From assembly GCF_030684315.1 (NCBI RefSeq), contig NC_081388.1:23419015-23483014 (forward strand): a stretch of 64,000 nucleotides of DNA, written 5' to 3'. The notes below the pieces were generated by a model. It was not told the origin of the DNA and ran no database searches. It saw nothing but the letters and a program-made list of their open reading frames with translations. Made by a program: the position numbers and the translations under genes. The DNA is from Stegostoma tigrinum. Lineage: Eukaryota. Shown here one piece after another: positions 13,005-54,835 of the stretch (position 1 is its first letter; each line of letters begins with the position of its first letter).

Positions 13005-14130
13005 ACAGTCATAGAGTAATACTGCATGGAAACAGGCCCTTCAGCCCAAACTGATCCATGCTGGCCATACCACCCACTCAGCTGACCCTTCCCATCCATG
13101 TACCTATCTAAACGTTGCTATTGTCTCTGCCTCAACCACTTTCTGTGGCAGCCCATTCCATATACGCACCACCCACTACATGAAGAAGTTGCCCCTCAGG
13201 TCCTTCTTAAATCTTTCTCCTCTTACTTTAAATCTGTGCCCTCTAGTTTTCAACTCCCCATCCCTGGGAAAGGGACAATATGCATTCATCTTCTTTACCC
13301 TCAGATTTTATACACCTCAATAAGGTCACCCCTCATTCTGCTACGTTCCATGAAATGAAGTCCTATCCTGAACAACCCTATCCTGGAGACCTAGTGGTAA
13401 TACCACTGGCATGTTAATACAGAGACCCAGATAATGTTCGAGGGACCTGGGTTCAAATCCTGCCATGGCAGGTGGTAGAATTTAAATTCAATAAATATCT
13501 GGAATTAAGCGTGTAATGGTGACCATGAATCCGTTGTTGATTGTTGAAAAAACCCACCCGGTTCACTAATGTCCTTTGGGGAAGGAAACTGCCATCCTTA
13601 CCTGGTCTGGCCTACATGTGACTGCAGACCCACAGCAATGTGGTTGATTCTTAACTGCCCTCTGGGCAATTAAGGATGGGCAATAAACGCTGTCCAGCCA
13701 GTGACTCCCTCATCCTGTGAATGAAAAAAGGAAAAGAAAACCTCTCCCTATAACTCAGGCCTACTAATCCTGGCAACGTCCTTGTAAATCTTCTGTGCCC
13801 ACTTTCTAGTTTAATTCCGTATTTCCTATAACAGGGTGACCAAAACTGTACACAATACACCAAGTGCAGCCTCACCAACACCTTATACAACTGTAACATA
13901 GGGTCCCAACTCCACCACTCAACCAGTGAAGGCCAGCCTGCTAAACGCCTCCTTCACCACCCTATCCACCCATCACACTGCTTGCACCATTCGTGTGCTT
14001 GTACACCTGCATCCCTGTGTTCCACGCCATTCCTCGGGGCCTTACCATTTACTGTATAACTCCTACCTTGGTTTGACTTTCCAATCTGCAGCACCTCACA
14101 GTTATCTGTATCGAGCTGCATTTGACTGAC
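13005..14130 (-). mobile_element. CR1 LINE 3' fragment interrupted by a SINE
   Basis: ORF 13651-13899 LQLYKVLVRLHLVYCVQFWSP matches the CR1 ORF2 C-terminus. Confidence 0.85.
13383..13730 (+). mobile_element. tRNA-derived SINE (Deu-domain/SacSINE1-like)
   Basis: A-box-like head, B box gggttcaaatcc, core ggttcactaatgtcc...gaaggaaactgcc...; at least seven copies in the window; family name from recall. Confidence 0.75.
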
Positions 14131-14589
14131 TTCTGTTAAGTGGCCCCTCATAATGTTGGACACCTCAATTACATTTCCTTTCAGCCTCTCTCCTCCAAAG
14201 AAAATCATCACAATCTGTTGAATATCTCTTCATATTTACAACTCTCCAGTCTCGGCAACTCCCTGTAAATCCCCTCTGATCACTCTTGAATGCCACCTTG
14301 TGTTTCTCAAATTGTCAACTGTTGTGACAAAAGCTGTACACAGTACTCACTGCTCGCTTCTGCCTCTTTCCAAAAATCCACAAACAGGACAGTGCCAGCA
14401 GCACCATTGTTCCAGCTTGCTCCTGCCCCACACAACTCATCTCTTCCTACCTTGACCCAGTCTTTTCTCCCTCTTCGAGTCCCTGCCCATTTCATCAGAT
14501 GTCATTCTGCCACCTTCAGTGAGATGCCACCACCAGACACATATTTCCCTAACCCCCTCTTGTCCTGCAGACCAGGGAGGTGCAGTTGT

Positions 14590-16900
14590 AGTATGACGCA
14601 CTGACCTTTACATCACAGAGGCCAGACGCCAGCTCTCTGACACCTCCTCCTATCTCCCCCGGATCATGACCCCAACCCCAACCACCAAACCATCATCTCC
14701 CAAACCATCCACAACCTCATCGCCTCAGGTGACCTCCTACCCACAGCCTCCAACCTCATCTTTCCCAACCCCGCAACACCAGCTTCTATCTCTTTCCCAA
14801 AATCCACAAGCCTGCCTGCCCTGGTCAACCCATTGTCTCCACCTGCTTCTGCCCCATTGAACTCATCTCCACCTGTCTCGACTCCATTTTCTCCCCCTTG
14901 GTCCTGGAACTCCCTGCTTATGCCCATGACACCACCCACACCCTCCACCTTGTCCAAGACTTCCAATTCCCCGGTCCCCAACACCTCGTTTTCACCATGG
15001 GCGTCCAGTCCCCATACGCCTGCATTCCTCATTCAGCTGGCCTAAAGGCCCTCCGCTTCTTCCTGTCCCACAGACCCGACCAGTCCCCCTCCACTGACAC
15101 CCTTATCCGCCTAGCCGAACCCGTCTTCACCCTCAACAACTTCTCTTTCGATTCCTCCCACTTCCTACAGACTAAGGGGGTGGCCATGGGTACCTGCATG
15201 GGCCCCAGCTATGCCTGCCTCTTTGTAGGTTACGTGGAACAGTCCCTCTTCTGCACCTACACAGGCCCCAAACCCCACCTCTTCCGGTACATTGATGACT
15301 GTATCGGCGCCGCCTCTTGCTCCCACGAGGAGCTTGAACAGTTCATCGACTTCACTAACACCTTCCACTTCAATCTCAAGTTCACTGGAAGCATCTGATT
15401 CCTCCCTCACCTTCCTGGACCTCTCTGTCTCCATTTCTGGTAACTGCTCTGAAACTGATATCTGTATCAAGATAACAACGTGTGGAGCTGGATGAACACA
15501 ACAGGACAAGCAGCATCTCAGGAGCACAAAAGCTGACGCTTCGGGCCTAGACCCTTATATCAAGTCTACCAACTCCCACAGCTACCTGGAATACACCTCG
15601 TCCCACCCTCCTACCTGCAAGAATGCCATCCCCTATTCCCAATTCCTTTGCCTCCACCGCATTTGCTCCCAGGATGAGGCATTCCGCTCCTGCACATCGC
15701 AGATGTCCTCATATTTCAAGGACCGCAACACCCCCCCCCCCCCCCCCCACCCCCCGCAGTGGTCAAAAATATCCATCACTGTCTTTGTTGTGTTTGCTGC
15801 ACCTCGGCCCTCACACGCCCAATAAAAACAGAATTCCCTTTGTCCTCATGTATCACCCCATTAACCTCTGGATTCAACGCACCATTCTCTGCCACTTCCA
15901 CCACCTACAATCTGACCCCACCACCAAGGATATATTTCCCTCCCTGTCCTTATCTGCCTTCCAGAGGGACCACTCTCTCCGCTCCACTGTCCGCTCCACA
16001 CTCCCCTCCAACCCTCCCACCCTCGGCACTTTTCCCCACAGCCGCAGGAAGTGCTACACTTGCCCCCACACCTCCTCCCTCACCCCATCCCAGGCCCCAA
16101 GAAGACTTTACACATCAAGCAGAGGTTCACCTGCACATCCGCCAATATGGTATACTGCATTCGCTGTACCCGTTGTGGCTCCCTCTACATTGGGGAAACC
16201 AAGCGGAGGCTTGGGGACCGCTTTGCAGAACACCTACACTCGGTTCATGACAAACAATAACACCTGCCCATTTACCTCCTCCCAGAGTAGTATCCAAGGG
16301 TCCAAACATACCTTCCAGGTGAAGCAACACCAGAATCTAGTTTACTGCATTCACTGCTCACAATGTGGGGTCTCTTCTACATTGGGGAAACAATGACCGC
16401 TTCACAGAACATCTACATTCTGCTCACAAAAAAGACCCTGAGCTTCCTGTTGCTTGCCACTTTCATGCACCACCGTGTTCCCTGACCAACATCTCTGTCT
16501 CTGGCTTGAGGCAGTCTTCCAGTGTCGCTCAATGCAAGCAGGAATAACAGCATCTCATTTTCCTCTTGGGGACCCTGCAGCCCTCTGGATTCAATATCGA
16601 GTTCAATACCTTTAGGGTCTAACTCTCCCATGTCCTCGGCCCATACCCCACACACCAGGTCTTGTTATCACATAGCCTGCCATTACACACTACCTATTGT
16701 TGGCCACTAACAGTCTCTATTAACAATTATTCACCCTCCCAGCCAATTATTATAAACTCCTTTGTCTATCCATGTGCTATTCTATCTCTTTGGGCTCTAT
16801 CCCCACCTGTTGTTTAATCCTGATCCCCTCTCCTCTCCCTATTTTCTGCATATCAACCTATATTTTCCCAGCAACCATCCAGTCTGAGGAAGGACCACCA
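14590..16900 (+). mobile_element. Penelope-like retroelement(s): degenerate RT plus GIY-YIG, with an inverted terminal fragment at about 15470-15557
   Basis: GVAMGTCMGPSYACLF, FRYIDD, VYCIRCTRCGSLYIGETKRRLGDRFAEH. Confidence 0.9.
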
Positions 16901-28045: not shown

Positions 28046-28147
28046 TACTCAATCAGGCTGGCTCTTGGATTTACATTTCTCCTTAAATTGTGCAAATTTT
28101 CTTATAATGGTGCCACTGGCTAATTGGATCCCTGGGATGCAATAAGC

Positions 28148-30870
28148 AACGACACCTTTATCAACGACATCTTCATTAACAACATCTTGATCAACGACAC
28201 CTTTATCAGCGAAATCTTTATCAATGACATTTTTATCAACGACACCTTTATCAGCGACACCTTTATCAGCGACATCTTTATCAACGACACCTTTATCAGT
28301 GACACCTTTATCAGCAACACCTTTATTAGCGACATCTTTATCAACGACACCTTTATCAGTGACACCTTTATCAGCAACACCTTTATTATCGACATCTTTA
28401 TCAACGACACCTATATCAATGACATCTTTATCAGCGACACCTTTATCAACAACACCTTTGTCAACGACATCTTTATCTACGACACCTTTATCAACGACAT
28501 CTTTATCAGTGACACCTTTATCAGCGACAACTTTATCAACGACATCTTTATCAACGACACCTTTATCAGCGACACCTTTATCAGCGACATCTTTATCAAC
28601 GACATCTTTATCAACGACATCTTTATCAACGACACATTTATGAGCGATATCTTTATCAACGACATCTTTATCAACGACATCTTTATCAACGACACCTTTA
28701 TCAGCGACATCTTTATCAACGACATCTTTACCAATGACATCTTTATGAATGACACCTTTATGAGCAATATCTTTATAAATGACATCTTTATCAACGACAT
28801 CTTTATCAGCGACACCTTTATCAACGACATCTTTATCAACGACACCTTTATCAACGACATCTTTATCAGCGACATCTTTATCAATGACTCCTTTATCAGC
28901 GACATCTTTATCAGCGACATCTTTATCAACGACATCTTTATCAATGACATCTTTATCAGCGACACCTTTTTCAGCGACAACTTTATCAGTGACACCTTTA
29001 TCAACAACACCTTTGTCAACGACATCTTTATCTACGACACCTTTATCAGCGACATCTTTATCAGCGACACCTTTATCAGCGACAACTTTATCAACGACAT
29101 CTTTATCAACGACACCTTTATCAGCGACATCTTTATCAACGACATCTTTATCAACGACATCTTTATCAACGACACATTTATGGGCGATATCTTTATCAAC
29201 GACATCTTTATCAACGACACCTTTATCAGTGACATCTTTATCAACGACATCTTTATCAATGACACCTTTATCAATGACACCTTTATCAGCGACACCTTTA
29301 TCAGCGACATCTTTATCAATGACACCTTTATGAGCAATATCTTTATCAACGACATCTTTATCAGTGACACCTTTATCAACGACATCTTTATCAACGACAC
29401 CTTTATCAGCGACATCTTTATCAGCGACACCTTTATCAACGACATCTTTATCAATGACATCTTTATCAGCGACACCTTTATCAGCGACACCTTTATCAGC
29501 GACAACTTTGTCAGTGACATCTTTATCAGCGACACCTTTATCAACGACACCTTTATCAACGACATCTTTATCAACGACACCTTTATCAACGACACCTTTA
29601 TCAACGACATCTTTATCAACGACACCTTTATCAATGACACCTTTATCAGTGACATCTTTATCAGCGACATCTTTATCAGTGACGTCTTTATCAGTGACGT
29701 CTTTATCAGCGACACCTTTATCAACGACATCATTATCAACGACACCTTTATCAATGACACCTTTATCAGCGACACCTTTATCAGCGACATCTTTAGCAGC
29801 GACATCGTTATCAGTGACATCTTTATCAGTGACGTCTTTATCAGCGACACCTTTATCAACGACACCTTTATCAATGACATCTTTATCAATGACACCTTTA
29901 TCAGCGACATCTTTATCAGCGATATCTTTATCAACGACACCTTTATCAGTGACACCTTTATCAACGACACCTTTATCAACGACATCTTTATCAACGACAC
30001 CTTTATCAATGACACCTTTATCAGCGACATCTTTATCAGCGACATCTTTATCAGCGACGTCTTTATCAGTGACGTCTTTATCAGCGACACCTTTATCAAC
30101 GACATCATTATCAACGACACCTTTATCAATGACACCTTTATCAGCGACACCTTTATCAGCGACATCTTTAGCAGCAACATCGTTATCAGTGACATCTTTA
30201 TCAGTGACGTCTTTATCAGCGACACCTTTATCAACGACATCTTTATCAGTGACACCTTTATCAGCGACACCTTTATCAACGACATCTTTATCAACAACAT
30301 CTTTATCAACGACACCTTTATGAGCGATATCTTTATCAACGACATCTTTATCAACGACATCTTTATCAGCGACACCTTTATCAACGACACCTTTATCAAC
30401 GACATCTTTATCACTGACAACTTTATCAACGACATCTTTATCAGTGACGTCTTTATCAGTGACGTCTTTATCAGCGACACCTTTATCAGCGACGTCTTTA
30501 TCAACGACATCTTTATCAGCGACACCTTTATCAGCGACACCTTTATCAGCGACACCTTTATCAATGACATCTTTGTCAACGACATCTTTATCAGCGACAT
30601 CTTTATCAGCGACACCTTTATCAATGACTCCTTTATCAGCGACATTTTTATCAACGACATCTTTATCAGCGACATCTTTATCAGCGACACCTTTATCAAC
30701 GACATCTTTATCAGCGACAACTTTATCAGCGACACCTTTATCAGCGACAGCTTTATCAACGACATCTTTATCAATGACACCTTTATCAGCGACACCTTTA
30801 TCAACGACATCTTTATCAACGACACCTTTATCAGCGACACCTTTATCAACGACACCTTTATCAGCGACAT
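28148..30870. repeat. 15-bp minisatellite, left part, about 181 copies
   Basis: Unit ctttatca(a/g)(c/t)gaca(c/t), constant register. Confidence 0.99.
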
Positions 30871-30964
30871 AGAACATAGAACATAGAACATAGAACAGTA
30901 CAGCACAGAACAGGCCCTTCAGCCCACAATGTTGTGCCGACCATTGATCCTCATGTATGCGCCC

Positions 30965-33862
30965 TCAAATTTCTGTGACCATATACATGTCCAGCAGTCT
31001 CTTAAATGACCCCAATGACCTTGCTTCCACAACTACTGCTGGCAACACATTCCATGCTCTCACAACTCTCTGCGTAAAGAACCTGCCTCTGACATCCCCT
31101 CTATACTTTCCACTAACCAGCTTAAAACTATGACCCCTCGTGCTAGCCATTTCAGCCCTGGGAAATAGTCTCTGGCTATCAACTCTATCTATGCCTCTCA
31201 TTATCTTGTATACCTCAATTAGGTCCCCTCTCCTCCTCCTTTTCTCCAATGAAAAGAGACCGAGCTCAGTCAACCTCTCTTCATAAGATAAGCCCTCCAG
31301 TCCAGGCAGCATCCTGGTAAACCTCCTCTGAACCCTCTCCAAAGCATCCACATCTTTCCTATAATAGGGTGCCCAGAACTGGACGCAGTATTCCAAGTGC
31401 GGTCTAACCAAAGTTTTATAGAGCTGCAACAAGATCTCACGACTCTTAAACTCAATCTCCCTGTTAATGAAAGCCAAAACACCATATGCTTTCTTAACAA
31501 CCCTGTCCACTTGTGTGGCCATTTTAAGGGATCTATGTATCTGCACACCAAGATCCCTCTGTTCCTCCACGCTGCCAAGAATCCTATCCTTAATCCTGTA
31601 CTCAGCTTTCAAATTCAACCTTCCAAAATGCATCACCTCGCATTTATCCAGGTTGAACTCCATCTGCCACCTCTCAGCCCATCTCTGCATCCTGTCAATG
31701 TCCCGCTGCAGCCTACAACAGCCCTCTTCACTGTCAACGACACCTCCGACCTTTGTGTCGTCTGCAAACTTGCTGACCCATCCTTCAATTCCCTCGTCCA
31801 AGTCATTAATTAAAATTACAAACAGTAGAGGCCCAAGGACAGAGCCCTGTGGAACACCACTCACCACTGACTTCCAGGCAGAATATTTTCCTTCTACTAC
31901 CACTCGCTGTCTTCTGTTGGCCAGCCAATTCTGTATCCAAGCAGCTAAGTTCCCCTGTATCCCATTCCTCCTGACCTTCTGAATGAGCCTACCATGGGGA
32001 ACCTTATCAAATGCCTTACTGAAGTCCATATACACCACATCCACAGCTCGACCCTCATCAACTTTTCTAGTCACATCCTCAAAAAACTCGATAAGGTTTG
32101 TAAGGCATGACCTCCCCCTCACAAAGCCGTGTTGACTGTATTTGATCAAGCCATGCTCTTCCAGATGGTCATAAATCTTATCCCTCAGAATCCTTTCTAA
32201 CACCTTGCAGACGACAGACGTGAGACTTACCGGTCTATAATTGCCGGGGATTTCCCTATTTCCTTTCTTGAAGAGAGGAATTACATTTGCCTCTCTCCAG
32301 TCCTCAGGTACGACTCCAGTGGAGAGCGAGGATGCAAAGATCTTCGCAAGTGGCGAAGCAATTGCATTTCTCGCTTCCCAAAGCAGCCGAGGACAAATCT
32401 GGTCCGGGCCTGGCGACTTGTCAATCTTAATGTTTGACAAAATTTTCAGCACATCAGCTTCCTCTATCTCTATCCATTCCAGCATGCACACCTGCTCTTC
32501 AAAGGTTTCATTCACTACAAAGTTCGTTTCTTTCGTAAAGACAGAAGCAAAAAACTCATTTAGGGCTTCCCCTACCTCCTCAGGCTCCACACACAAGTTC
32601 CCTATGCAATCCCTGATCGGCCCTACTCTTTCTTTGACCATTCTCTTATTCCTCACGTAAGTGTAAAATGCCTTTGTGTTTTCCCGGATTCCTTCTGCCA
32701 AGCCTTTCTCGTGCCCCCTCCTGGCTCTCCTCAGACCATTTTTGAGCTCCTTCCTTGCCTGCATGTAATCCTCTCTAGCTGAACTTGACCCTAGCTTCCT
32801 CCACCTTATGTAAGCTACCTTCTTCCTTTTCACAAGAAGCTCCACCGCTGTCGTCATCCAAGGTTCCTTTATCTTACCCCTTCTTGCCTGTCTCAGAGGG
32901 ACATATTTATTCATCACTCGCAACAACTGTTCCTTAAACAGTCTCCACATGTCTATAGTGCCTTTACCATGGAACAACTGCTCCCAGTCCATGCTTCCTA
33001 ACTCACGTCTAATCGCATCATAGTTTCCTCTTCCCCAATTAAATATCCTCCCATTTTGCCTAATCCTCTCCTTCTCCATAGCTATGGAGAATGTGAGGCA
33101 GTTATGGTCACTATCACCAAAATGCTCTCCCACCACAAGATCTGATAACTGCCCCGGCTCGTTTCCGAGCACCAAGTCTAGAATGGCCTCTCCCCTCGTT
33201 GGCCTGTCAACGTACTGCGTTAGGAAACCCTCCTGAACACACCTTACAAAAACAGCTCCATTCAAATCTTCTGCTCGAAGGAGGTTCCAATCAATATTAG
33301 GAAAATTAAAGTCACCCATTACAACAACCCTACTGCGTCCACACTTTTCCAAGATCTGTCGACCTATGCTTTCTTCAATCTCCCTGCTGCTATTGGGGGG
33401 CCTGTAGTAAACCCCTAATGAGGTGACTACTCCCTTGCTGTTCCTAATTTCCACCCATACTGGCTCGGTAGGCAGTTCTTCCTCGACAATGGAAGCTTCT
33501 GTAGCTGTGATACCCTCTCTGATTAGTAGTGCTACACCCCCTCCTCTTTCTCCCCCCTCACTATTCTTTTTAAATGCCCTAAACCCTGGAACATCCAGCA
33601 ACCATTCCTGCCCATGAGAAACCCATGTCTCTGTTATGGCCACAACATCATAGCACCAGGTACTGATCCATGCTCTAAGTTCATCACTTTTATTCCTGAT
33701 ACTCCTTGCGTTAAAGCAAACACACTTTAACCGATCCCTTGGTTCCTTCCCAGGAAAATCCTTCCCACTAGCTGGTCTACCTCTTGCTATTGCCTCACCT
33801 GCATCAACTCTCACCTCCGGTATACAGCTCAGGTTCCCACCCCCCTGCCATGCTAGTTTAAA
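30965..33862 (-). CDS. CR1 ORF2: apurinic-like endonuclease plus reverse transcriptase
   Basis: FNARS, ITETW, GGGVAL, YRPP, GDFN, SDH; [33 protein letters not shown]. The track start at 33973 is TTG; the first ATG lies inside the endonuclease domain. Confidence 0.95.
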   Translation of the reverse strand, partial: FKLAWQGGGNLSCIPEVRVDAGEAIARGRPASGKDFPGKEPRDRLKCVCFNARSIRNKSDELRAWISTWCYDVVAITETWVSHGQEWLLDVPGFRAFKKNSEGGERGGGVALLIREGITATEASIVEEELPTEPVWVEIRNSKGVVTSLGVYYRPPNSSREIEESIGRQILEKCGRSRVVVMGDFNFPNIDWNLLRAEDLNGAVFVRCVQEGFLTQYVDRPTRGEAILDLVLGNEPGQLSDLVVGEHFGDSDHNCLTFSIAMEKERIRQNGRIFNWGRGNYDAIRRELGSMDWEQLFHGKGTIDMWRLFKEQLLRVMNKYVPLRQARRGKIKEPWMTTAVELLVKRKKVAYIRWRKLGSSSAREDYMQARKELKNGLRRARRGHEKGLAEGIRENTKAFYTYVRNKRMVKERVGPIRDCIGNLCVEPEEVGEALNEFFASVFTKETNFVVNETFEEQVCMLEWIEIEEADVLKILSNIKIDKSPGPDQICPRLLWEARNAIASPLAKIFASSLSTGVVPEDWREANVIPLFKKGNREIPGNYRPVSLTSVVCKVLERILRDKIYDHLEEHGLIKYSQHGFVRGRSCLTNLIEFFEDVTRKVDEGRAVDVVYMDFSKAFDKVPHGRLIQKVRRNGIQGNLAAWIQNWLANRRQRVVVEGKYSAWKSVVSGVPQGSVLGPLLFVILINDLDEGIEGWVSKFADDTKVGGVVDSEEGCCRLQRDIDRMQRWAERWQMEFNLDKCEVMHFGRLNLKAEYRIKDRILGSVEEQRDLGVQIHRSLKMATQVDRVVKKAYGVLAFINREIEFKSREILLQLYKTLVRPHLEYCVQFWAPYYRKDVDALERVQRRFTRMLPGLEGLSYEERLTELGLFSLEKRRRRGDLIEVYKIMRGIDRVDSQRLFPRAEMASTRGHSFKLVSGKYRGDVRGRFFTQRVVRAWNVLPAVVVEARSLGSFKRLLDMYMVTEI

Positions 33863-34323
33863 CCCTCTCGAACGACTCGAGCAAACCTTCCACCCAGGAC
33901 ATTGGTCCCCTTCCAGTTCAGATGCAACCCGTCCTTCTTGTACAGGTCCCACCTTCCCCAGAAGGCATCCCAATTATCTACATATCTGAAGCCCTCCCTC
34001 CTACACCAGCTGCGCAGCCACGTGTTAAGCTGTGCGCGCTCCCTGTTCCTCACCTCGCTATCTCGTGGCACCGGTAGTAAACTAGAGAACACTACTCTGT
34101 TCGTCCTGCTCTGCAGCTTCCATCCTAACTCCCTGAAATCACTTTTTATATCCTCAATCCTTTTTCTGGCTATATCATTTGTGCCAATATGTAACACAAT
34201 TTCTGGCTGTTCGCCCTCCCCTTTTAGAACCTTATACACCCGATCGGAGACGTCCCGGACCCTGGCACCAGGGAGGCAACATACCTTCCGGGATTCCCGA
34301 TCTTGACCACAAAATCTCCCATC
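33853..34323 (-). CDS. CR1 ORF1 C-terminal fragment, SGNH/GDSL esterase domain
   Basis: DGRFCGQDRESRKVCCLPGARVRDV, LHIGTND (block III), DGLHLN (block V); the GDS block is lost by truncation. Confidence 0.9.
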   Translation of the reverse strand, partial: DGRFCGQDRESRKVCCLPGARVRDVSDRVYKVLKGEGEQPEIVLHIGTNDIARKRIEDIKSDFRELGWKLQSRTNRVVFSSLLPVPRDSEVRNRERAQLNTWLRSWCRREGFRYVDNWDAFWGRWDLYKKDGLHLNWKGTNVLGGRFARVVREGLN

Positions 34324-35703
34324 TTTATCAGCGACCTCTTTATCAACGACACCTTCATCAGCGACACCTTTATCAGCGACACCTTTATCAGCGACATCTT
34401 TATCAACGACATCTTTATCAACGACACCTTTATCAGCAACATCTTTATCAGCGACATCTTTATCAACGACACCTTTATCAGCGACACCTTTATTAGCGAC
34501 ACCTTTATCAACGACATCTTTATCAACGACATCTTTATCAGCGACATCTTTATCAGCGACACCTTTATCAATGACTCCCTTATCAGCGACATCTTTATCA
34601 ACGACACCTTTATCAGCGACACCTTTATCAGTGACACCTTTATCAACGACATCTTTATCAACGACATCTTTATCAGCGACATCTTTATCAGCGACACCTT
34701 TATCAATGACTCCTTTATCAGCGACATCTTTATCAGCGACATCTTTATCAACGACACCTTTATCAGCGACACCTTTATCAGCGACACCTTTATCAGCGAC
34801 AACTTTATCAGTGACATCTTTATCAGTGACACCTTTATCAGTGACATCTTTATCAACGACATCTTTATCAATGACACCTTTATCAGCGACACCTTTATCA
34901 GCGACATCTTTGTCAACGACACCTTTATCAACGACACCTTTATCAACAGCACCTTTATCAGCGACAACTTTATCAACGACATCTTTATCAACAGCACCTT
35001 TATCAGCGACAACTTTATCAGTGACATCTTTATCAGCGACACCTTTATCAATGACACCTTTATCAGTGACATCGTTATCAACAACATCTTTATCAATGAC
35101 ACCTTTATCAGCGACACCTTTATCAACGACACCTTTATCAGCGACACCTTTATCAACAACATCTTTATCAACGACATCCTTATCAGCGACATCTTTATCA
35201 GCGACATCTTTGTCAACGACATCTTTATCAACGACACCTTTATCAACGACACCTTTATCAACAGCACCTTTATCAGTGACATCTTTATCAATGACACCTT
35301 TATCAGCAACACCTTTATCAGCGACATCTTTATCAACAACATCCTTATCAGCGTCATCTTTATCAGGGACACCTTTATCAACGACACCTTTATCAGCGAC
35401 ACCTTTATCAACGACATCTTTATCAACGACACCTTTATCAACGACACCTTTATCAACAGCACCTTTATCAGCGACATCTTTATCAACGACACCTTTATCA
35501 GCGACACCTTTATCAGCGACATCTTTATCAACGACATCCTTATCAGCGACATCTTTATCAGCGACATCTTTGTCAACGACATCTTTATCAACGACATCTT
35601 TATCAGCGACACCTTTATCAGCGATATCTTTATCAACGACATCTTTATCAATGACACCTTTATCAGTGATATCTTTATCAACGACATCTTTATCAATGAC
35701 ATC
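34321..35703. repeat. 15-bp minisatellite, right part, about 92 copies
   Basis: Same unit as 28148-30870. Confidence 0.99.
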
Positions 35704-35775
35704 TCTGACAATGACCTTTAGAATTTGTGAGACAACAAAGGGATTATTTCAGCACCTGACACACATCTCACACGT

Positions 35776-36060
35776 AGAGTGACAGAGGAGTTTGTGATTG
35801 ACATTGTGGTGTTAGAGCCCAAGTCCACTTCAGCCAAGCAGGTGTACTCCTGTCCATCATCTGATAGACTTGCAGTGAAATTGAAGACATTTCTCAACCT
35901 GTTATCTTCATCCGGAAGACCTTGTTTTTCTGCAGAATTTCTCTGAACAATCTCACTCCCTCTCAACCATGTGAGAATGAGTTTGTTGTTTGGGTAGACT
36001 CTTGGTCCGATGCACTGCAGATCATATATTTTGTTGACCTCCAGCACTTCAGGGAGTAAT
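35776..36060 (-). pseudogene. Pseudogene C, Ig domain 2 exon remnant
   Basis: Core matches gene B D2; acceptor cacag changed to cacgg, about 20-nt 5' deletion, QTY|gtaagt end lost; upstream intron resembles that of gene A. Confidence 0.88.
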
Positions 36061-38150: not shown

Positions 38151-38949
38151 CTTTGTTTCTTTGTTTCTTTCTTTGAAAAGATTAGAAAATTTTACAAGAA
38201 CACGTCCGCAGCAGATCTTTGAAGAATTGCACTGCCCAAGGATCGAACCCTGGACACTGTTGGCGAAGTCCTGGCCAGATTCCATCATGAATCAGGTAAG
38301 TGCCAGTTTAAGGTTATGAGACTTAACTTGTTTACTTGAGGTTGCTACATGCAAGAAGGTTTAAATCATTGTTTCAGAACTTCATTTTCACTCAGATTTC
38401 TTAATAAATGGTTGAATTCAAGGTAATTTGTAGGGATTTACCTGAAACAGTGCACAACTAGAAGTACAGCCAACAACAGCAGAAATGCATATCATGAGCA
38501 AATCTCCACAATTTGAAAACATACAATTCACGCGCAGAGATTGATGAAAGTAGAACTGACTGTACTTACCACAGGGTTTTGTAAATGAATGAGATTACAC
38601 TTTGTGTCTGTGTTTTTTAGGTAATTTGTGTAACTTACAATTGCAGATGATGGAGCTTCTTTTTAAGAGAAGAGGCCGTCCTGGAGAGATACGCTAGCTA
38701 GCATGCAGTCATCATGCGACCTTCCCCACCACTCTAAGTGCTGTTGTGGACAGTCTGTGAAAGCAAACCTGGAAGTGGCAATGATATTTGTTCCTTGTCA
38801 TTTATTCTTCCTCGTTACAAGTTGCATTGATTTCTCTAATTCTAATTCTAATTTGACTTGAATACTTGTCAGTCTGCACAGACCTAAAACTGCTAACATC
38901 GCTACTGACGTGATTACAAATACCTTTCAACTATTTAAGTAAGACATTA

Positions 38950-40170
38950 AGGAAAAGCCAGGGAACTATACACCAGTGAGCCTGACATCAATAGTGTGCA
39001 AGTTGTTGGAGGAGGTTCTGAGGGACAGGATTTACATTTATTGGAAAGGCAAGGACTGGTTAGGGGCAGTCAGCATGGCTTTATGTGTGGGGAATCGCCC
39101 CTCACTAACTTGATTCAGTTTTTTGAAGAAGTAACAAGCAGGATGGGGGATGTGATCTGTGTGGACTTCAGTAAGCCATTTGTCGAGGTAGTAGATGGTA
39201 GACTGGTCAGCAAGGTTGGATCACATGGATCACAGGGAGAACCAAGCATTTGGATACAGAACCGGTTCATAGGTAGAGGACAGTTGGGGGTGGTGGAAGG
39301 TTGCTTTCAGGCTGGAGGCCTGTCACCAGCGGTGTGCCATGTGGGTCGGTGCTGGGTCCACTGCTTTTTGTCATTTATATAAATAATTTGGATGAGAACC
39401 TGGGAAATATGGTTAGTGAGTTTGCAGATGACACCAGCATTGGAGGTGTAGTGGACAGCGAAGAAGGTTACCTCAGAGTACAACAGGATCTTGATCAGGT
39501 GGGCCAATGGACCGAGAAGTGGCAGATGGAGTTTCATTTAGATAAATAAGAGGCGCTGCATTTTGGAAAGGAACATCAGGGCAGGACTTATACACTTACT
39601 GGTTAGGTCCTGGGGGGTGTTACTGAATAAAGAGACCTCGGAGTGCTGGCTCATAGTTCCTTGAAAGTGGAGTTGCAGGTAAACAGGATAGTGGAGAAGG
39701 CATTTGGTATGCTTGCCTTTATTGGTCAGTGCATTGGGTATAGGAGTTGGGAGGACATGTTGTAGCTGTACAGGACGTCGGTTAGGCCACTTTTGGAATA
39801 CTGTGTGTAATTCTGGTCTCCCTGCAATAGGAAAGATGTTCTGAAACTTGAAAGGGTTCAGAAAAGATTTACAAGGATGTTTCCACGGCTAGAGCTACAG
39901 GGAGAGGCTAAATAGGCTGTCGCTATTTTCCCTGGAGTATCGGGGGCTGAGGGGTGACCTACAGAGGTTTATAAAATTATGAGGGGCATGGAGAGGGTTA
40001 ATAGACAAGGCTTTTCCGCAGAGTAGAGGAGTCCAAAACTCGAGGCATTGGTTTAAGGAGAGAGGGAAAAGATTTAAAGGGACCTAAGGGGCAACTTTTT
40101 CACATGTAGGAATGAGCTGCCAGAGGAAGTGGTGGAGGCTGGTATAATTACAACATTTAAAAGGCATCTT
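38950..40170 (+). mobile_element. Degenerate CR1 LINE RT and 3' region
   Basis: [22 protein letters not shown] with frameshifts and stops. Confidence 0.9.
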
Positions 40171-54234: not shown

Positions 54235-54835
54235 GGACGGGGTATTGAGTACAAGAGTTGGCAGGTCATGTTACAGTTGTATAGGACTTTGGTTCAACCA
54301 CTTTTGGAATACTGCGTACAATTCTGGTCGCCACATTACCAAAAGGATGTGGATGCTTTGGAGACGGTGCAGAGGAGATTCACTAGGATGTTGCCTGGTA
54401 TGGAGGGCACGAGTGATGAAGAGAGGTTGAGCAGATTAGGATTATTTACATTAGAAAGACAGAGGTTGAGGGGGGACCTGACTGAGGTCTACAAAATCAT
54501 GACACCTATAGACAGGTTGGATAGCAAGAAGGTTTTTCCCAGAGTGGGTTCTCAATTACTAGGGGTCATGATTTCAAGGTGAGAGGGGAAAAGTTTAAGG
54601 GAGATATGCGTGGAAAGTTCTTTATGCAGAGGGTGGTGGGTGGCCAGAATGTATTGCCAGCAGAGGCGGGCACGATAGCTTCATTTAAGACGTATCTAGA
54701 CAGATACATGAATGGGCAGGGAGCAGAGGGATAGAGATCCTTGGAAAATAGGCGACAGGTTTAGATAGAGGATCTGGATCGGCGCAGGCTTGGAGGGCCA
54801 AAGGGCCTGTTCCTGTGCTATCATTTTCTTTGTTC
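54235..54835 (+). mobile_element. CR1 LINE 3' end
   Basis: ORF 54268-54582 LEYCVQFWSP...VQRRFTRMLPG. Confidence 0.9.

Follow-up and report, generated by a model that had tools for sequence, protein, structure and literature searches.

Most non-mammalian vertebrates have CR1 as their dominant retrotransposon. A CR1-clade long interspersed element (LINE) lies within a 64,000-nucleotide stretch of Stegostoma tigrinum DNA (contig NC_081388.1, positions 23,419,015 to 23,483,014; called here the window, with positions counted from its first letter), and the junction between its two open reading frames (ORFs) contains a candidate programmed −1 ribosomal frameshift site. We consider, with a probability of roughly 0.65, that the junction of this recently active cartilaginous-fish LINE carries a conserved programmed −1 frameshift signal, which would give rise to a fusion of the ORF1 and ORF2 proteins (ORF1p and ORF2p).

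The closest described systems are the Gag-Pol frameshift junctions of retroviruses, long terminal repeat (LTR) retrotransposons and PEG10, which, like the CR1 copy, have an upstream structural or accessory ORF, a reverse transcriptase-bearing ORF in the −1 frame and an in-phase heptamer close to where the first ORF ends. Those systems are expected to yield a low-abundance fusion, which for CR1 is a prediction. CR1 differs from them in being a non-LTR element whose ORF1 encodes an esterase instead of Gag and which has no protease to cut a fusion; moreover, whereas the Gag-Pol systems combine the heptamer with a 3′ pseudoknot, in CR1 the stop codon touches the heptamer and no stimulatory hairpin was found. 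The PEG10 heptamer is G_GGA_AAC, and U_UUA_AAC is the −1 frameshift site of coronaviruses. The coronavirus ORF1a/1b site shares both the heptamer and the −1 direction with CR1, with no evolutionary relation between them, but coronaviruses depend on a three-stem or H-type pseudoknot that is well defined and lies 5-6 nucleotides downstream, and nothing comparable is predicted in CR1. The frameshifting compendium of Atkins et al. names the heptamer U_UUA_AAC and covers LTR elements, PEG10 and Drosophila HeT-A but not CR1 (PMC5009743).

Among LINE-like elements, the Dictyostelium non-LTR retrotransposons TRE5-A and TRE3-A are described as needing a −1 frameshift for ORF2 (PMC5911963), a precedent by description that differs from CR1 in clade, host and ORF1. 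In human L1 and silkworm SART1 the LINE RNA is bicistronic and ORF2 expression depends on ORF1 translation (PMC2881922, PMC3708506). L1 has an inter-ORF spacer and SART1 an overlapping UAAUG; the CR1 copy, in contrast, has no AUG, an ORF2 overlapping in the −1 frame and a conserved heptamer. A review of LINE protein biogenesis presents ORF2 initiation as an open question and discusses reinitiation, internal ribosome entry sites and 2A, never frameshifting (PMC3894237), Han (2010) gives only reinitiation for LINE ORF2 (PMC2881922), and a 2026 survey of vertebrate CR1-group elements mentions neither overlap nor frameshift (PMC13343379). No paper retrieved by our full-text literature search connected UUUAAAC or −1 frameshifting with CR1 or L2; the primary CR1 literature in subscription journals, where an earlier remark is possible, lay outside its scope. 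A −1 frameshift between the accessory and reverse transcriptase ORFs of a retroelement is thus a known kind of event, of which CR1 would plausibly be a new case.

The ORF1/ORF2 junction

The junction sequence quoted in the earlier note on this DNA was the reverse complement of the window, which places the element on the minus strand (coordinates of all features are given in Table 1). As that note had claimed, ORF1 ends GAG GGT TTA AAC TAG, so that the heptamer U_UUA_AAC stands in X_XXY_YYZ phase directly before the stop codon. The −1 frame was likewise found to be the uninterrupted ORF2: from TTT AAA CTA GCA TGG (FKLAW...) it reads FKLAWQGGGNLSC..., stays open for 965 codons and meets no stop until 30965. 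On the minus strand, ORF1 codons start at positions with remainder 0 on division by 3 and ORF2 codons at positions with remainder 1, which identifies ORF2 as the −1 frame. This frame is additionally open upstream of the shift site, over the end of ORF1. The codon preceding UUA supplies a second in-phase heptamer, G_GGU_UUA, that overlaps the first, and GGGTTTA and TTTAAAC are the only in-phase X_XXY_YYZ sites in the ORF1 fragment.

No ATG occurs in the ORF2 frame before the Met of VVVMGDFN, which lies past the catalytic CFNARS and ITETW motifs of the endonuclease, again in agreement with the previous description. An ATG just past the ORF1 stop (33851-33849) was rejected as an ORF2 start, because it is in the +1 frame and that frame closes after 15 codons. 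The copy in the window therefore combines an in-phase heptamer with a downstream −1-frame ORF, open from the heptamer onwards and lacking an independent start. A G-rich tract, GGCAGGGGGGUGGGAACCUG, begins 6-7 nucleotides past the heptamer, in line with the earlier note.

The probability that a canonical heptamer touches the stop codon by chance is about 0.2% (some 32 of 16384 heptamers fit X_XXY_YYZ). Given the amino acids Gly-Leu-Asn and the codon usage of the element itself, in which TTA accounts for 11% of Leu codons, GGT TTA AAC would be expected in 1.3% of cases.

The Leu-Asn ending and the copies of the family

The ending of ORF1 recurs in its relatives. Of 12 close ORF1 homologues, nine have E[G/D]LN immediately before the stop. 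A search of 1.84 billion cluster representatives gave 1744 matches, the best 150 of which were examined; 52 of these 150 end in Leu-Asn, at identities down to about 35%. Among complete-looking tails of the 'GLHL' or CR1 type, 43 of 73 end in Leu-Asn, 36 of them exactly 22 residues past the block-V His, while the six residues preceding Leu-Asn vary freely. Tails of the 'GLHP' type, to which the zebrafish L2 element ZfL2-1 belongs, mostly lack this ending, and the signal therefore appears to be specific to the CR1-type branch. The Leu-Asn tails came from cartilaginous fishes (whale shark, electric ray, sawshark and elephant shark) and from sturgeon, deep-sea eel, painted, snapping and alligator snapping turtles, tortoise, poison frog and Komodo dragon; the closest relatives of the element are all cartilaginous fishes.

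The residue before Leu-Asn is Glu, Lys, Gln, Met or Trp, none of which has a U-ending codon, in only 2 of 59 tails versus 15.8% in neighbouring sequence (P = 0.003; 0.01-0.02 with distinct tails), the cluster representatives being mutually related and these P values accordingly rough. One of the two exceptions is an internal Leu-Asn cut by a contig end, without which the count becomes 1 of 58 (P about 6e-4, and about 3e-3 after removal of near-duplicate tails). Such U-compatibility is a requirement of NNU UUA AAC. In five further tails the last residues are Gln-Gly-Asn, in agreement with CAG GGA AAC, that is, the other canonical heptamer G_GGA_AAC.

In two relatives the junction could be read from the ORF2 side. 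P0015 starts LRGFKL... in the ORF2 frame, and P0007 crosses into ...RGVFKLIWQG; since Phe-Lys-Leu in the ORF2 frame is combined with Leu-Asn-stop in the ORF1 frame, the nucleotide sequence in both must be U UUA AA[C/U] followed by a stop. Beyond this, the linker of the window copy is conserved with that of P0015 only at its start (FKLxxQGxGNLxC).

At the nucleotide level, contigs from four sequencing runs, each of a differently coded organism, were aligned to 33500-34300. Each run contributed 5,000-15,000 matching contigs, and 973-1827 of them were at least 99% alike, from which we conclude that the family is very abundant and young and that the intact copy is representative of it. None of the variable places compared (the best-supported 40 of 192) fell within 33853-33871. 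The nearest is 33852, the base after the ORF1 stop, which on the element strand is C in the window copy and U in nearly all family contigs of the four runs (UAG-U), so that in the ORF2 frame Ala is replaced by Val. Many contigs remain aligned across the stop and the heptamer as far as 33867, beyond which they diverge into a different ORF1 tail. Counted by codon position, about 18 of the 26 listed variable places in ORF1, including its overlap with the ORF2 frame, are third positions of the ORF1 frame, and within the overlap (33863..33973) the listed variants are mostly silent in the ORF1 frame and not in the ORF2 frame. In the endonuclease 8 of 10 are third positions of the ORF2 frame, and the three variants closest to the linker are nonsynonymous. 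From these positions we conclude that selection operates on the ORF1 frame as far as the heptamer, and on that of ORF2 within the enzyme, the linker between them being free.

As a separate observation, about 60% of the 31-mers sampled from 33300-34280 were present in runs of four organism labels and about 30% in runs of a fifth. The family is thus nearly identical across several labelled taxa, which are either close relatives or hosts of very recent activity.

The window holds a second, old copy with an esterase remnant at 10819-11278 (33-49% identical at the protein level), which reads GAT TTA AAC TAA at 10796-10787. Old and young copies are roughly half identical, and the longest exact run between them, TTTAAACTA, is tied at 9 nucleotides with two others. 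The UUA codon, rare for Leu in this element, is present at the site in both. The old copy is uninformative as to the frame relation, because indels have taken its endonuclease remnant out of the −1 frame of the heptamer. Taken together, the comparisons suggest that the heptamer has been kept among diverged relatives beyond what the protein needs, directly so for the two window copies and indirectly for other species.

Searches for further loci were negative within their scope. Searches of metagenome, viral and genome contigs with the ORF1 alignment yielded no CR1 locus and one unrelated bacterial SGNH match (L001), the ORF2 alignment yielded no CR1 locus among viral contigs, and a degenerate DNA pattern for WDLYKxDGLHL matched nothing in metagenome contigs.

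Several database entries drew attention on their own account. The entry P0007 (UniRef UPI0016259AB3) carries the name 'SGNH/GDSL hydrolase family protein, Proteus mirabilis'; it shares 73% identity with this shark-type CR1 ORF1 and continues into the ORF2 frame, and most likely it is vertebrate DNA contaminating a bacterial assembly. A Komodo dragon protein of 1496 residues annotated 'Collagen alpha-1(XVI) chain' (P0084, KAF7245806.1) and an unnamed frog protein of 980 residues (P0065, CAJ0941587.1) both end in a CR1 esterase ORF1 with a Leu-Asn tail, and look like chimeric annotations that absorbed a LINE ORF1. The tail of P0092, ...KTFLNFKLVAKK..., has Phe-Lys-Leu immediately after Leu-Asn and in one frame with it, as though both frames of the junction had been read successively; this may be a duplication or a gene-model artefact.

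Routes to ORF2 expression

The earlier note had proposed a gag-pol-like ORF1-ORF2 fusion made by −1 frameshifting, with a stem, pseudoknot or G-quadruplex in the G-rich tract as a possible 3′ element. The comparisons above strengthen the heptamer as a selected signal. The proposed stem or G-quadruplex stimulator, on the other hand, found no support, its folding being no better than that of shuffled sequences and its G-quadruplex motif only two-tier. A long-range pairing of CUAGCAUGG with CCAGCUAG, seen in the minimum free energy fold, was rejected as a stimulator because it starts inside the heptamer. Simple stem enumeration in the young and old copies gave nothing significant.

According to the mechanism that we favour, ribosomes translating the esterase ORF1 would reach G_GGU_UUA_AAC before UAG, and most of them would terminate and release ORF1p. 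A minority would slip back by one base, the Leu and Asn tRNAs re-pairing from UUA-AAC to UUU-AAA or, alternatively, the Gly and Leu tRNAs slipping on GGU-UUA, and would go on with CUA GCA UGG to make an ORF1p-linker-endonuclease-reverse transcriptase fusion similar to retroviral Gag-Pol. Slippage on U_UUA_AAC would give ...EGLN-LAWQ..., with EGLNLAWQGGGNLSCIPEVR as the predicted tryptic transframe peptide, and slippage on G_GGU_UUA would give ...EGLK-LAWQ... (transframe EGLKLAW...). Such a frameshift would set a low ratio of ORF2p to ORF1p and would deliver ORF2p in cis to the ORF1p-coated RNA. We speculate that the adjacent stop codon, which has the same position in most Leu-Asn tails, might slow the ribosome; alternatively, an unrecognised RNA element may provide the stimulus. 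The anatomy, the relation of the frames, the absence of an AUG from the window copy and the conserved Leu-Asn-stop ending are observed, and from there on slippage, its efficiency and its stimulus are what we infer.

Several observations weigh against a frameshift signal. Minimum free energy folds of the 76 and 133 nucleotides after the heptamer, in which pseudoknots were not modelled, had z-scores of +0.4 to +0.5, and the best hairpin starting 5-9 nucleotides downstream (a 4+4-bp stem) was equalled by 66 of 200 shuffles. No three-tier G-quadruplex motif was detected by regular expressions, the two-tier motif has no counterpart at the corresponding place in the old copy, and an Rfam search gave no match. 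Minor variants inside the heptamer are possible, since the places compared were 40 of the 192 variable ones. Conservation outside the host genome was deduced from proteins alone, nucleotide-level comparison covering the window copies and the family contigs. Finally, an in-frame ATG ahead of the endonuclease had been named beforehand as an observation that would speak against the proposal, and, formally, such an ATG is present in three of five ORF2 relatives: the first residue of P0013, P0014 and P0016 is a Met lying 8-20 codons ahead of the endonuclease (before GLKCV), so that separate ORF2 initiation in some subfamilies is possible. The ORF2s of these three are about 70% identical, and 72-86% over the matched part of the N-terminal region. 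Their Met residues, however, are at non-homologous places in the variable linker, and the window copy and P0015 have none. The objection is weak because the positions differ, because the gene caller takes any ATG and because chance alone would put a Met into most variable linkers of about 50 codons; the linker ATGs of the relatives fit chance.

As an alternative to frameshifting, ORF2 could be made by termination-dependent reinitiation or by another AUG-independent start in the linker, as reported for human L1 and silkworm SART1, and UUUAAAC-stop could be kept for some other reason, for instance because it belongs to a termination or reinitiation context or because ORF1p requires this C terminus. 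Reinitiation is the route that reviews name for LINE ORF2, frameshifting being absent from their lists (PMC2881922, PMC3894237), the absence of a convincing predicted 3′ structure is in line with it, and an in-frame CUG is found 10 codons past the heptamer. We nevertheless regard this route as unlikely, since it predicts neither a canonical slippery heptamer in exact phase, nor the near-absence before Leu-Asn of residues that lack a U-ending codon, nor an alternative Gln-Gly-Asn tail that fits a second canonical heptamer, and since the linker start conserved between the window copy and P0015 precedes every codon at which a restart would be plausible.

A combination of coincidence and shared ancestry, in which Leu-Asn would be a structurally needed end of the esterase and UUA AAC inherited and not selected, seems to us very improbable. 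The phylogenetic relatedness of the cluster representatives and the derivation of the nucleotide data from one genome leave some room for it, and so does the L2-type esterase of ZfL2-1 (PDB 4C1B), which works without a Leu-Asn ending and shows that this ending is not universal. Against it, Leu-Asn, the stop position and a preceding residue that allows a final U persist in different vertebrate classes at identities of 35-45% while the six preceding residues vary, the rare UUA stands in both window copies, and two relatives show F-K-L when read in the other frame.

That active master copies start ORF2 at an AUG of their own in the linker, by leaky scanning or internal entry, the window copy being incompetent and its heptamer incidental, is hardly credible, for although three relatives do start at a Met, those starts are no evidence of use for the reasons given above, and the window copy, whose ORFs are intact, has near-identical relatives in the thousands.

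Setting of the element and implications

The element is truncated at its 5′ end inside ORF1, at about 34322, where it abuts a 15-bp satellite; the rest is intact, with both ORFs uninterrupted (Table 1). The ORF1 fragment matches the esterase of ZfL2-1 ORF1p (PDB 4C1B) with E=2.7e-25 and is 61-74% identical, over its own stretch, to four shark-type ORF1 proteins (tblastn). In vertebrate CR1 and L2, no ORF1 subtype other than the esterase type has been identified (PMC13343379). The SGNH esterases of ZfL2-1 and of this element are homologous, but the tail of the latter groups with the 'GLHL' type of turtle and shark proteins and not with the 'GLHP' type of ZfL2-1. In ORF2, the Pfam domains Exo_endo_phos and RVT_1 occupy a single uninterrupted frame, the N-terminal apurinic-type endonuclease standing ahead of the reverse transcriptase as in CR1-clade LINEs. 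The 3′ end consists of a (TTCTATG) repeat, which we take to resemble the octamer of amniote CR1 and the short repeat tails of CR1 elements. Esterase ORF1, endonuclease-reverse transcriptase ORF2 and 3′ repeat tail all fit an assignment to the CR1 clade.

Table 1. Positions of the element, of its junction features and of the old copy within the window.
Feature	Position	Strand	Basis or remark
CR1-clade LINE copy, 5′-truncated, in 15-bp satellite array	30867..34322	minus	both ORFs open; satellite on each side
ORF1 fragment, C-terminal SGNH/GDSL esterase, 155 codons + TAG, tail ...VVREGLN-stop	33853..34320	minus	Pfam PF13472, 1.6e-12
Slippery heptamer U_UUA_AAC, 0-frame phase, adjoining ORF1 stop	33856..33862	minus	sequence
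10-nucleotide slip tract G_GGU_UUA_AAC (two overlapping in-phase heptamers)	33856..33865	minus	X_XXY_YYZ scan
ORF1 stop TAG	33853..33855	minus	sequence
ORF2 from the heptamer, −1 frame (FKLAWQGGG...), stop TGA at 30965-30967	30965..33862	minus	translation
ORF2-frame open stretch overlapping the end of ORF1, 37 codons	33863..33973	minus	translation
Variable linker from shift site to endonuclease (AWQGGGNLSC...KEPRDR), no ORF2-frame ATG	33736..33852	minus	comparison with relatives
Weak 4+4-bp hairpin, 7 nucleotides after the heptamer, inside the G-rich tract	33824..33848	minus	no better than shuffles
Apurinic-type endonuclease domain of ORF2	33104..33715	minus	Pfam PF03372, 2.3e-17; residues 87-290 of the 1002-codon open frame
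Reverse transcriptase domain of ORF2	31541..32269	minus	Pfam PF00078, 1.3e-34; residues 569-811
3′ terminal microsatellite (TTCTATG) x4.4	30867..30897	minus	repeat tail instead of poly(A)
Old diverged CR1 copy, GAT TTA AAC TAA, in-phase heptamer then stop	10787..10796	minus	sequence

The satellite, with a unit of about GATAAAGRTGTCGYT and 86-87% matches, extends over 28147-30870 (182 copies) and 34323-35695 (92 copies). Since it flanks the LINE on either side, the CR1 copy must have been inserted into one satellite array. The long multi-frame 'ORFs' in the satellite (up to 942 amino acids) were discarded as artefacts of the 15-bp period. Just past the satellite, an open stretch on the minus strand (35718-36047) resembles an immunoglobulin-superfamily domain (…YTCLAEVDLGSNTT…). 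Three more CR1 fragments, at 509-1838, 38931-40017 and 54244-54663, are 66-72% identical to the main copy and span only the reverse transcriptase or the 3′ part, as expected from 5′ truncation.

A broader reading, to which we give slightly less than even odds and which is put forward tentatively from the protein tails, is that a −1 frameshift at U_UUA_AAC (or G_GGA_AAC) touching the ORF1 stop may be the ancestral and conserved route of ORF2 expression in esterase-type CR1 LINEs of jawed vertebrates. It would yield a fusion without a protease and without a classical downstream structure.

Reviews acknowledge that the way in which LINEs other than mammalian L1 and SART1 translate their second ORF is still an open question (PMC3894237, PMC2881922). 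If true, a frameshift route would be a LINE translation strategy apart from L1 reinitiation, SART1 coupling and 2A skipping, and frameshifting without a strong 3′ structure would be of interest to the recoding field. Leu-Asn-stop encoded on UUUAAAC would provide a simple mark for competent CR1 copies, and the annotation of ORF2 in genome pipelines, which now yield orphan or chimeric gene models, could be corrected. For the CR1 family itself, a conserved slippery site, if true, would offer a concrete and testable mechanism for the supply of ORF2p and for its cis-preference, and would predict the existence of an esterase-endonuclease-reverse transcriptase fusion protein.

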